Below are positions 1,409 through 12,481 of a stretch of DNA of 64,000 bases, piece after piece. Below the pieces are notes generated by a model that saw nothing but the letters and a program-made list of their open reading frames with translations, did not search any database and was not told the DNA's origin. The stretch lies in the NCBI RefSeq assembly GCF_006345805.1, contig NC_043025.1, positions 8,804,001-8,868,000 of the forward strand, in the 5' to 3' direction. The stretch comes from Octopus sinensis (Eukaryota). Every line of letters begins with the position of its first letter. The first letter of the stretch is position 1. Both the position numbers and the translations under genes were made by a program.

Positions 1409-1999
1409 CTGAGACATTCCGGGTACGTACCCTAACAAGAGATGACATCTCAGATCAAACAGTGGACTAATATTATTGTTTAGCATTTTCATAACATGAT
1501 AAATCATGAAGAATTTCTGGAGGATAACTTTGCAAAATATGTTGAAACTATCGATGCCATCTTTCACCAAATAAACATTCACAGCAACACAAAACAATTC
1601 ATTAAGCAAAACAATTAATTAAGCAATCAAAGCCTCTAATGTTGTTCTTTAATCGCTCAATTGAGATTTTCTCATTGAATCTTTTATTTTACCAAAAATC
1701 ATTCTCATGTTCTTGTAAGTAACATTGTCTTTATCAGATACTGATAAATCATTAATCAACTCTAATCACTCGCAATTGACTGTAAAAACATGATATTTAC
1801 TGAGGGAATCTGGCAGCTTTATTAATATTTCTGTTAGTCGCCGTTTAACTTGCTGTATCACTCATTAGTCTTATCTTGCAAACAGTATCATCTTGAAGTG
1901 TAGCAAACCTTGTATTTGGACGAAGACGAAGTTTGGTGGATGTGGTGATTGATAAAGTATCAATAAGGAAAGATACTTGGAAAAGTTTTTATCATAAAT
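1409..1999 (-). pseudogene. Possible decayed coding exon downstream of the RING exon
   Basis: About 150 codons (1858-1409) in one frame with only 3 stops, ending at a donor-like CAG|gttagg. A further 40+ codon stop-free stretch lies upstream in another frame. Product not recognised. Confidence 0.3.
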
Positions 2000-2106
2000 C
2001 TGCTACATTTATGACAGGCGTGACTCTATATAGAAACACGAAGTACATTATTCAACAGCATAAAGTCGATGAGACAAACAGACAGATCATCAAATAGTAT
2101 TCTTAC

Positions 2107-2249
2107 CAAATCCACGTTTGTCAACTATAACTTGTTGACACTTGGGACAATTTTTAGGCTCATTTTCTGAACAGCAATCTTTGCATGTAACAGTGTGCTC
2201 ACATGGTTGAAACGTCACTGTAGCTTCACTAGATTTACACAGCAGACAT
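2107..2249 (-). CDS. RING finger exon (C3HC4, MIB/IAP-type spacing)
   Basis: C-x2-C-x11-C-x-H-x3-C-x2-C-x8-C-x2-C in ORF 2090..2278. Acceptor gttttgttcaacag|A and donor TTTG|gtaaga. Confidence 0.88.
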
Positions 2250-5200
2250 CTGTTGAACAAAACATAGAGACATAACACTGATGATATTCATTTATAACAA
2301 ATATTGCATTGAGTACATGTTTAGAGTACAGATTATTACGAGATACTAAAGGAACCAGCAAAAGTACAACAAAAAATCTTTTTTAAATAATTACATGAAT
2401 GCAAATGATATCTGTACAAAACCCAAGAACTCTTTTGAAAATTCATGAGTTGAATGCAGTAAAAGTCATGCTTCTATCTGCCTTCAATGCACAACTAATC
2501 TCTTGATGATCCCAGTCCAAGAAAAAGGTAAAAAATGGTTCTATGATGGATGGAATATAGGAAATGGCCCAACCCACAATTTCAGTGCCTGACCTGTGTG
2601 TCTTTTCGAACTATTGCTGTCAAACAAAAGCAGTCCATCCACAAGGAAATTACGGATAGTCGATAAGGGATTTCCGAATTGAGCATCGAAATTGCAGATA
2701 TTAAAGCAAAAATCAGAGGTATTCGATTAATGAATGAAATATGGCGACTGTTCTCTATTGCAGGAGGTCAATAGGCACTTCTGGTTTGTGATTAGTGTGA
2801 AAAAGATGATGAAACGATGTGTGAAAAAGATGATGAAAAGATGATGTGGTCTTTGGTCAAAACACGGAATAACGTAATGGGAGAATTAAAACGAAACGAA
2901 ACATATGAACATAATTGTGTACAAAATAAAAAATTCTCTGCTTTGTCTTGTCATTGTTAGAGAATACTTACAATGGTGGTGGGAAAAGTGCTTTAATTCT
3001 TTCCTTTAAATTTGTATCGTTGATAAGATCCAGCGGCATCACATTCCATACGTTTCTGTGGTAAAAGTTGGCTCCATTGTCGGCCAGATAACAAGCCACT
3101 GCTAGGCTTGAAAGCTTGCCTTCTTTGCTAAGCTGGAGCTTTTTGTAGTACTACAAATGATGAAATATAAAAAGGACAAGTACAATAGTACACAAATACA
3201 AACAAAATCATAACATCAAGTCAAATACATGAAATATAATGGAACAAATATCACAATAATAAAACACCTATCTATGCAAGTGGCTTGATGAAGGCAATTG
3301 GACACAGCAACAGAAATACTTTGGGAAGAATATTGTGTATATTAATATAACCCCTGTCAGCATAGACGATGGGTATTAAATGATGATGATGATGACGATG
3401 ATGATGATGATGAGGGTGGTGGTGGTGGTTGCGATGGTGATGATCGCGACGATGACGACGATGATGATGATGAACACAACAAGACAACAAAACATATATA
3501 TCAGAAACAACAGAGAACACCTAAGACATAGCAATTTCTTCAGATGTAACAAAACCAACACCACACAGACTTATCCAAATATATCAACAATGTTTCCATA
3601 ATTATTAAAGAAACATCTTTGGGTGATGAAGGTGAAGTAAAAGAAGTAAGAATTGGTGTCACGGTTGAGGCAACACACCAACACATTATATTTGATAAAC
3701 TGTTGAAACTGTTAGTCTGACAGACAATTCCAGCAATGGAGGGTGAAGGGCATTTGACTGCCAGGAGATTTTCTTACCAAAGTGGACATTACCACAACAC
3801 AAAGATGACCATCAACTGTCTGAAAATCAGTCACAAATCTGTAGAGACCGTTACTCATGTGGGAATCAGTGAGTTGCTTCAGGTGCGCAAAATTTGACAG
3901 TAAATACTGTTAGATCTACTGATGGTTAGATGTTGATGTATTTGTATTTTCACACACACACACACACACACACACACACACACACACACACACACACACA
4001 CGCATACACACATGTATGTGAGTGAAAGTAAGTGAACAAATGAGAGAGGGGCACTCAACCAATTCATTGGAAGTTACATGTATGGATCAAAACAGTTTGG
4101 ATCATTAAACTATTTGATCCATATATATATATATATATATATATATGTATATATATATATATAATATATATATATATATATATATATATAATATATATAT
4201 ATATATATATATATATATATATAAGTGTGTGTGTGTGTGTGTGTGTGTATGTACGTACGTATGTATGTATATTGCTTTATTGTATCCATTCTCTAGTGTT
4301 CTAACATTCAATATTGTTATGACATGTCCACATGAAGCCAGAGGATACATGTTGTGTACAAGAAGTAAGACAGGGAGCTGTTTCTTCAGAATCCCTCATA
4401 GAATGGAATGGACGTATTCATCATGGCACTTGCATTCTAAAGGTTGTCATCATGTCTCTCTGTTCCTCTTTCTATCTCTTATAAATAAATCTACACGTAT
4501 ATATATTTACAAATAATTTTAAAACTTACCTTATCCAAGACAGTTAAGGATTCATCCTCAGTATGGAACTCCTCTTTCCTCACCGCAAGGTGAAGACAAT
4601 TGTTTCCGATATTATCGACCACTTTTACGTCTGCTCCTTTAGAAATGAATTCCTGCATTATTCTGAAGTTGCCGGTAGAGACAGCTTGAAGAAATGGTGT
4701 CATATCATCCCAGTTTGTTATGTTCAATTTCACCGAATCCTTTGTCGAAGTAAAAAGAGAGAATGAAAATTTACATGAAAACAAGGGTGGCTATCAATGT
4801 GTCATTACTGCCTTCTACTGGGTACTTGATCAAACCGATCGTGTACATTTCATGTTTGTCAGTGAAGTTAGCCTTGCATAAGGTCCCTCTGTAACTTGCT
4901 ATGAGTGTGTTTAAGAGACATGATACATCTATTAAGATGTAATAAACAGATTGGTTCAGCCTAATCTACGTTTATCCCTCACTGAAGTAAAATTTAGGGG
5001 AGTTCAAATGGACCTAACACAAGATTAGCAGGTTAAGTTTAATAAAGAAGACCTATATGTCTTGCGTATAATTTTGATGTTACTAAATTAATAAGGGGTT
5101 CATAAAATTTATGTCAAAGCAAAATCGAACGCACAAACACATGGAGTGTGTGTCGTTAAGTTCTTCGGCTGGCTGCATTTTTAGGTGTGAGAGAATATAT

Positions 5201-11882: not shown

Positions 11883-11985
11883 CTGAAAAGAAATAACAAT
11901 AAAAAGTCTAAAAATTGTGGCTAGGAAATGAAAAGTAGAAGCTTTAAACAATTCTCAGAAACAGAAGATAAAGTATTCGACTCAC

Positions 11986-12007
11986 ACACAGGAGGAATGA
12001 TGCGTTT
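11986..12007 (-). CDS. Candidate 22-nt micro-exon upstream of the ankyrin exon (I|NASFLLC)
   Basis: Acceptor tctcatttcattactcacccctag|A and donor TGT|gtgagt; phase 2 to 0 fits the array exon. Confidence 0.4.
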
Positions 12008-12431
12008 CTAGGGGTGAGTAATGAAATGAGATTTGTATTGTATTAATAGACAGGTACACTCACAGGTATAGATAGATACATATACATTTGAGTGTATCGA
12101 TAATACACAAACTCATATATTTATAATCTCTTCCTCTCAGTGTTGTAGCAAAGGATGGTGTCTAGATAATGGAAAGAAGTGAAGAGAGTGTGTAGTGGGG
12201 ATTGATCTAATCTCATCAAAGATTTGATGTTTTCATATATTTGACAGAACAACGAATTGGTATAACTCCTGACGTCCAAAAGAACTTTCAACTGTGTATG
12301 CCAAGAGAACGTCATGACAAAGTCACCATCCATCTACTGGCTGCATCTGTCTCTCATCTCTTGGACGACTGAATATTCCCTGCCAGAATACTCCGTTGCA
12401 GTGTGTGATGACAGGCTTCTCTCCCACTCAC

Positions 12432-12481
12432 ATTCCATCAACTCTGACATGCTTCATGATTGGGTTAAATTTTCATAAACT
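12432..12481 (-). CDS. Candidate start-codon exon (ATG at 12457, MKHVRVDG)
   Basis: Pyrimidine-rich acceptor ...ttctcattatcattag|A and donor GGAAT|gtgagt. There is an in-frame stop upstream of the ATG, and it ends in phase 2, matching the 22-nt exon. Confidence 0.35.

Follow-up and report, generated by a model that had tools for sequence, protein, structure and literature searches.

The stretch of Octopus sinensis DNA analyzed here (NCBI RefSeq assembly GCF_006345805.1, contig NC_043025.1, positions 8,804,001 to 8,868,000 of the forward strand; 64,000 nucleotides, called the window below and numbered from its first letter) holds what we take, with a probability of roughly 0.55, to be a minus-strand gene of an Octopus-lineage ANK(n)–RING–Death family, with six of its eight coding exons inside the window. 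With one missing base restored as N, the model yields 1,085 aa within the window and a full protein of 1,176 aa, in which about 29 ankyrin repeats (an ANK region of 908 aa) are followed by a RING and then by a Death domain. A first-pass annotation, made from the letters alone, had arrived at about 1075 aa and had placed the RING at the C-terminal end; its length holds approximately for the in-window part, but the full protein is longer, and the Death domain that it missed changes the functional picture. Taken together, the domains suggest to us that the most likely role, at slightly better than even odds, would be that of a RING ubiquitin ligase recruited through its Death domain and using an ankyrin solenoid for recognition. 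The family is already annotated in NCBI but is uncharacterised, and a giant array of 25 ankyrin units is the distinguishing and only new feature of this copy. Our literature searches found no description of an octopus ANK–RING–Death family.

Gene Model and Splice Junctions

The exons all lie on the minus strand and are described in their order of transcription. Exon 1 (12620..12703, 84 nt) opens with an ATG at 12703, encodes MEFDENISKHLLSDTQYIKEYIEQNSHK, and closes on a phase-0 donor (AAA|GTAAGT). By sequence comparison it is homologous to the N-termini of the full-length paralogues P0128, P0136, and P0288 (MEVDKNISKILLDEIQYVQEYIRNNSQK|INETNS…), and it joins "INQQNRDGDTLLHLAC…" at the acceptor of the ANK exon, 737 nt downstream of this start exon. 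The 5′ end at about 12457 that had been proposed for the gene must accordingly be moved to this family-conserved exon. Exon 2 (9281..11882, 2,602 nt) carries the ankyrin array between the acceptor TTTCTTTTCAG|ATA and a phase-2 donor (CTAAG|GTGAGT). Splicing of the ANK exon straight to exon 4 was rejected because phase 2 would then enter phase 0, out of frame, and reach a stop; a micro-exon was therefore sought, by enumerating phase-compatible mini-exons across the 4.5-kb interval between the ANK exon and exon 4, and was found. This exon 3 (8407..8443, 37 nt, A|CAA AGC … CAG) encodes (R)QSYDVVALMISQ, lies between a strong acceptor (CTTTCTATAACTTTCAG) and the donor GTTAGT, and converts phase 2 to phase 0. 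It fills out exactly one 34-residue ANK repeat, the 26th (NTLLHQAVLRQSYDVVALMISQDSVKLNITNWDD), and can be aligned with "LKQHYDVVALMLAQ" of the full-length paralogues. It also explains the beginning of the Octopus vulgaris model P0001, which starts at the micro-exon Met ("MLSQ|DSVKLNITN"). An exact search of the window for the "MLSQ" exon gave no match, the version in the window being "MISQ".

Exon 4 (4530..4739, 210 nt; DSVKLNITNWDDMTPFLQAV…LTVLDK), placed by tblastn of P0001-P0004, splice sites, and paralogue alignment, supplies the end of repeat 26, all of repeat 27, and the beginning of an atypical repeat 28. Exon 5 (2972..3150, 179 nt; YYKKLQLSKEGKLSSLAVACYLADNGANFYHRNVWNVMPLDLINDTNLKERIKALFPPP(L)) encodes a Mind-bomb-like last ANK repeat, and exon 6 (2107..2249, 143 nt) encodes a single C3HC4 RING (CLLC…PCEH…C..C…CPKC) ending on a phase-1 donor, G|GTAAGA. 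Exon 6 is not terminal: the O. sinensis protein P0002 ("MIB2-like", 256 aa) runs on as "RGFG|SLKLKE…" into a Pfam Death domain. The 3′ end previously placed near 1992-2093 ("GKNTI*") is intron read-through beyond the GTAAGA donor at 2107, where the RING exon ends. On the basis of P0002 exon mapping in L001, a sequence of the older assembly GCA_006345805.1, the intron that follows (1..2106, minus strand) leads toward two Death-domain exons past the left edge of the window. In the older assembly these exons occupy L001 14904-14981 and 17010-17210, beginning about 0.7 kb past window position 1, and tblastn of P0001-P0004 found no Death-domain match anywhere in the window. The same intron, downstream of the RING exon, contains an AT-rich tandem repeat at 95-563 whose periods are 57, 112, and 169 bp, the 57-bp unit occurring about 8 times, and intron 3 contains an "RRLHWYGHV" fragment that resembles the tail of a reverse transcriptase.

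All six in-window exons have consensus splice sites and consistent phases once the 37-nt micro-exon is included; the phase-consistent exon chain of the first-pass annotation thus stands with the micro-exon and fails without it. The model is collinear with 14 paralogues at every junction (alignment A1), of which 13 are 43-52% identical to the first sequence of the alignment and the most distant one is 34% identical. In the spliced 1,176-aa model, Pfam assigns residues 28 to ∼1010 to ANK, 1038-1079 to zf-C3HC4_3, and 1094-1170 to Death, and finds nothing else of substance; only 28 residues stand ahead of the first ANK repeat. A structure model computed from the 4-sequence P0002 alignment reached a pLDDT (predicted local distance difference test score) of 40 and was unusable. 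We note that the exon 1 donor (12620) and the exon 4 acceptor (4739) are both phase 0. Skipping of the array exon and the micro-exon would keep the frame and give a short candidate protein, about 296 aa long, that consists of the N-cap, some 2.5 ANK repeats, the RING, and the Death domain and in which the frameshift discussed below is bypassed.

The Ankyrin Array

Tandem Repeats Finder reports a 102-bp period at 9347-11809, with 24.2 copies, 90% matches, and a score of 3748. Translation of exon 2 resolves this into 25 in-register 34-aa ANK units of 102 bp, followed by the first helix of a 26th repeat; unit translation and pairwise unit comparison place the 25 units at 9310..11858 on the minus strand. 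Pfam recognizes Ank in the array translation with E ∼ 1e-64 for the first 281 aa, and in the full model with E = 2.5e-201 over 23 stretches, Ank_2 reaching E = 3e-206 (PF00023/PF12796, above cut-offs). The three approaches bear out the earlier description of a 25-unit array contained in one exon.

The core units 2-23 differ pairwise by 1-21 nt per 102, and units 1 and 25, at the two edges, stand 27-45 nt apart from the rest. Several sets of units are nearly identical (10/12/20, 11/21, 14/15, and 19/23), which indicates recent segmental duplication inside the array. From these comparisons we read the array as genuine and recently amplified, with internal segmental duplications; the pattern is the wrong one for duplication by the assembler. 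The ANK framework residues (TPL, G, LL, and VN) are invariant across units. The commonest amino acid polymorphisms fall at unit positions 1, 5, 6, 10, 21, 31, 33, and 34, most of them on the face formed by the β-turn and the first helix, the surface that ankyrin proteins use for binding. Independent events are few, so that the placement of polymorphisms on the binding face is suggestive only. A hidden Markov model built from the units detected no further ANK fragments elsewhere in the window. When the array and the N-terminus were used as queries in word-indexed homology searches, the matches were generic ANK proteins only, at no more than 55% identity, and no array-bearing orthologue was found in the database.

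RING, Death Domain, and the Older Assembly

The RING is single and is recognized by Pfam as zf-C3HC4_3 with E = 4e-8. All eight zinc ligands are present (C191, C194, C206, H208, C212, C215, C224, and C227) and occupy invariant or near-invariant columns of alignment A1. Its best matches in the PDB are the RINGs of XIAP and cIAP, and E2-dependent ubiquitin ligase activity is predicted from the presence of this domain. The Death domain (PF00531) belongs to P0002, which matches the window exactly in its upstream exons, and the Death-domain exons map in L001, outside the window; among solved structures the domain is closest to the Death domains of ankyrin-3, RIPK1, PIDD, and CRADD, with ankyrin-3 the nearest. 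Searched against 5.8 billion proteins, the 182-aa translation of the three 3′ exons has only four matches, all of them Octopus proteins named "E3 ubiquitin-protein ligase MIB2-like". P0002 is 100% identical across exons 4-6 and carries the Death domain.

The older assembly accounts for the short length of P0002. It has a 100-N gap in intron 3 (L001 7968-8067, corresponding to about window position 6640) with unrelated sequence upstream of it, so that the array is not adjacent to exons 4-6; the RefSeq model begins inside exon 4, at an internal Met, and nothing upstream of it is annotated as a gene. Given the gap and the displaced array, the 256-aa RefSeq model is truncated. A comparison of the two assemblies also bears on selection. 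Exons 4-6 differ at 1 of 532 nt, by an apparently synonymous mismatch (the P0002 residues are unchanged), compared with 121 mismatches at 5,527 positions of non-exon DNA (about 2.2%; binomial P = 1e-4 for the exon contrast). Since these exons are far less diverged than the flanking DNA, the 3′ half of the gene appears to be under constraint.

An Octopus Family Possibly Related to Mind Bomb

We searched exhaustively with HMMER, using P0002 as the query against 1.84 billion cluster representatives, and filtered the results locally with phmmer. The ANK–linker–RING module was found in 44 clusters at 50% identity, 21 of which also contain the Death domain, and every module cluster with a named source (30 of 30) comes from Octopus sinensis, vulgaris, or bimaculoides. 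Full-length members have the order ANK–RING–Death and span 390-653 aa; P0151 and P0141 instead have a second RING and lack the Death domain. In front of the module, annotated members have 0-519 aa of ANK sequence, compared with 908 aa in the present gene. A lineage-specific multigene family, as the first-pass annotation had suspected, is therefore what is found, with ANK regions of widely varied length rather than one gene of fixed length. Database names within the family are inconsistent (MIB1-like, MIB2-like, ankyrin-1/3-like, PSMD10-like, and RF_0381). The present gene has all of the family's N-terminal hallmarks, namely the conserved N-terminal exon (M-x-x-D-x-N-I-S-K…IQY…NS.K), the 34-aa ANK repeats, and the "YDVVALML.Q" helix, as well as the module motif MTPFL…NNCLHLA…FHSE…LD…YLA..GA.FYH.N…PLDL…C..C. 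Some long top matches (P0125-P0127, P0132, P0169, and others) were rejected as family members; they are generic ANK proteins with neither a RING nor MIB domains.

The ANK–RING–Death paralogue P0288 (604 aa, XP_029653061.1) lies at L001 23786-27213, tail-to-tail with this gene and about 6.6 kb beyond its last exon, which indicates that the family is locally clustered on the chromosome. The same contig, of 17 Mb, also carries P0003 and P0141, and at the P0004 locus (L002) there is a distant, non-orthologous paralogue. In other marine invertebrates, lineage-specific expansions have been described of death-fold proteins fused to ankyrin repeats and ubiquitin-system domains (PMC8195603).

The divergent ANK repeats, the MIB-like segment ahead of the RING, and the single RING had all been noticed earlier, and each is supported here. 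The best PDB match to the pre-RING segment ("ACYLADNGA..PLDL"), and its one specific match among solved structures, is the last ANK repeat of human MIB1 (8v0e residues 334-384). One sequence alone reaches E = 0.0019 and the profile of the family E = 1.1e-11, with tankyrase-2 next best at 2.4e-8 for the profile; alignment over profile positions 2-184 is seen for no chain other than MIB1. These matches make it plausible that the ANK C-terminus and the RING derive from an ancestor resembling Mind bomb, specifically from its C-terminal half. To that extent the derivation from Mind bomb proposed for the gene is retained, but the product is not itself a Mind bomb because it has no MIB/HERC2–ZZ–REP head, has one RING, and has a Death domain. 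The absence of the N-terminal domains, which the first-pass annotation had also reported, extends to the spliced 1,176-aa model, where no MIB/HERC2, ZZ, or REP was found (Pfam; no dedicated REP profile match), and to the 10 kb upstream (11883-21882), where minus-strand stop-free stretches of at least 35 aa matched no Pfam family.

Proposed Function and Alternative Readings

If the gene acts as its domains suggest, the ankyrin solenoid would bind a protein target and the RING would recruit a ubiquitin-charged E2 enzyme. The Death domain may recruit the ligase to, or oligomerise it on, death-fold complexes of the ankyrin/RIPK1/PIDD/CRADD type, and bound partners would then be ubiquitinated, in a manner comparable to the action of MIB2 and the cIAPs on RIPK1 complexes. 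Several points weigh against a working ligase of this kind. Every functional step is drawn from domain content. At the position just after the last RING Cys, which usually has a part in activating the E2~ubiquitin conjugate, this copy carries Gln, against Arg in the majority of paralogues (A1). The frame as assembled runs into a stop at 10964-10962 and would give a 334-aa product. The array itself occurs in none of 5.8 billion database proteins, and the freedom of its units from stop codons is weakly informative (P ∼ 0.05-0.2). In addition, the unit-to-unit differences look statistically neutral: distinct variants among the core units number 13 synonymous to 33 nonsynonymous, or 72% nonsynonymous against a neutral expectation of 74%, and the ratio of nonsynonymous to synonymous polymorphism (pN/pS) is 0.83. 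This neutrality leaves the "expandable" and "immune" sensor of the first-pass annotation conjectural. A stronger version of the ligase reading, which we regard as rather doubtful, would hold that the frameshift is an assembly error, that the 1,176-aa ligase works, and that it belongs to an octopus-private, rapidly diversifying family of sensor-effectors in innate immunity or cell death with a TRIM/NLR-like logic. The solenoid would in that case be lengthened and varied by exon-internal amplification of units, with the amino acid changes located on the face of the β-turn and first helix (unit positions 1, 5, 6, 9, 10, and 31-34) while the framework residues stay fixed, and target binding would be wired to both ubiquitination and death-fold signalling.

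The frameshift is also the starting point for the strongest rival, a young pseudogene or null allele in which the one-base deletion in unit 9 disabled the gene and the array, a coding minisatellite, expands neutrally and serves no selected function. We consider this possible, if distinctly less probable than a functional family member. The frameshift itself, already noted in the first-pass annotation, is well defined: the array is one base short between 11040 and 11039 (minus strand), where the assembly reads TAT·CACCACTATAC and the other units read TACACACC…, and it brings a stop at codon 335. We judge the context of the gap (TAT·CACC), which is not a homopolymer, to be atypical for a polishing error, and the neutral variation among units and the lack of any database protein with the array are also in keeping with decay. 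Either the copy is intact and the gap an error of assembly, or the allele was inactivated very recently; if the gap is real, this copy is a null allele. Against decay, all six in-window exons have kept consensus splice sites, the roughly 1,085 codons contain no stop once the single shift is set aside, the framework residues do not vary across units, and exons 4-6 have diverged far less between assemblies than their flanks. It seems to us improbable that the locus comprises two genes, one with ankyrin repeats only (exons 1-2) and the other a short ANK–RING–Death gene beginning in exon 4, as P0002 does. Many family models are indeed short, and the NCBI model in the older assembly starts at the exon 4 Met with no gene upstream, but the 100-N gap, which separates the micro-exon from exon 4, and the displaced array make that short model an assembly artefact. 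Moreover, exon 2 ends at a donor and not at a stop codon, the micro-exon and both of its junctions align with full-length paralogues, and the O. vulgaris P0001 contains the micro-exon. The reading to which we give the least credence, and very little of it, is an ordinary MIB1 or MIB2 paralogue with its MIB/HERC2–ZZ–REP exons farther upstream. It would suit the MIB1/MIB2-like names that NCBI gives to the family and the resemblance of the last ANK repeat to that of MIB1, but it is contradicted by the family-conserved initiator exon 737 nt upstream of the ANK exon, by the Pfam-negative stretches at 11883-21882, by paralogues that have complete N-termini and still lack MIB/HERC2, ZZ, and REP, and by the combination of one RING with a Death domain, an arrangement that Mind bomb does not have.

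We continue to favor a Death-domain-recruited RING ligase. Cephalopod innate immunity and cell-death signalling are little known, and the family would offer a concrete candidate, open to testing, for the way in which octopuses sense pathogens or stress. The array would be a natural example of a binding surface enlarged through tandem exon-internal amplification. The truncated 256-aa public model and the inconsistent names hide the size and architecture of the family from comparative analyses.

Other Repeats in the Window

The remainder of the window contains repeats of several kinds. Two 184-185-bp tandem arrays of 4-5 copies each, at 48348-49265 and 62027-62768, seemingly represent the same repeat in inverted orientation, with the common core GGGTCGATGTAATCGACTT, and look like a satellite or a repeat derived from a short interspersed element (SINE). 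A further interspersed repeat of about 170-450 bp, present in at least 10 copies with 80-94% identity to L001 7798-7967 and to L002 (34453-34610, 37559-37970, 40298-40453, 45358-45484, 54312-54785, 59215-59353, and others), is probably an abundant octopus SINE. Degraded retrotransposon remnants lie on the minus strand at 44342-44797, ∼17000-19500, and 6015-6212; the remnants include a zf-RVT open reading frame (ORF; E = 1.6e-6), a weak RVT_1 stretch ("FVDLTKV…FANDCALVA"), and the "RRLHWYGHV" fragment of intron 3 noted above. A 168-bp unit duplicated in tandem at 57880-58265 (2.3 copies, 97% identity) gives rise to long ORFs on both strands without a significant Pfam match, and its peptide (…YSERLTSLGMDTLKLRRL…) resembles the C-terminal tail motif of the reverse transcriptases of long interspersed elements. 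Two other tandem duplications appear young, one with a 428-bp unit at 21832-22677 (2 copies, 98% identity) and one with a 250-bp unit at 40960-41620 (2.6 copies, 97% identity). A compound microsatellite, (TACA/TACACACA)n, spans about 525 bp at 56696-57220, and an (ATA)n microsatellite spans about 450 bp at 63181-63632; in both, several frames contain spurious ORFs 140-230 aa long.

Comparison with Known Systems

The gene resembles MIB1 and MIB2 in having an ankyrin domain followed by a C3HC4_3-type RING, and its last ANK repeat is of the MIB type. It differs from them in that the substrate-binding head (MIB/HERC2–ZZ–MIB/HERC2 and REP) is absent, in that its RING is single, and in that only it has a Death domain. 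Mind bomb proteins have about 9 ANK repeats, compared with about 29 here, and two or three C-terminal RINGs, of which the last forms the C-terminus; MIB2 has two, as do the paralogues P0151 and P0141. A functional likeness to MIB2 may lie in action on Death-domain signalling complexes, as both RIPK1 and cFLIP are ubiquitylation substrates of MIB2 in TNF death signalling (PMC7815719). The IAP ligases (XIAP, cIAP1/2, and the oyster IAPs) share the RING subtype, and oyster IAPs, which combine BIR, Death domain, and RING (PMC8917759), likewise join a recognition module to a death fold and a RING. In the IAPs, however, the recognition module is BIR instead of ANK, and in the octopus protein the Death domain follows the RING, so that the polypeptide does not end with the RING.

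Adaptors of the ASB ANK–SOCS-box type and poxviral ANK/F-box proteins also couple a variable ankyrin target surface to ubiquitination, as described in PMC9414399. They are cullin-ligase adaptors with no RING or Death domain of their own, and we see no evidence of common descent. Ankyrins (ANK1/2/3) and NOMPC, both among the top PDB matches, share the very long ANK solenoid, and ankyrins also end in a Death domain. Canonical ankyrins have 24 repeats, and NOMPC has 29. The ZU5–UPA/spectrin-binding region of the former and the channel domain of the latter are absent here, whereas the octopus gene has a RING and near-identical amplified units. The closest relatives are the octopus paralogues (e.g., XP_029652081.1, XP_029653061.1, and CAI9726805.1), which share with this gene the N-terminal exon motif, the 34-aa repeat style, the micro-exon helix, the ANK–linker–RING module, and the Death domain. 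The repeats ahead of the module are heterogeneous in those paralogues, whereas in this gene they are mostly the 25 near-identical units of the array.

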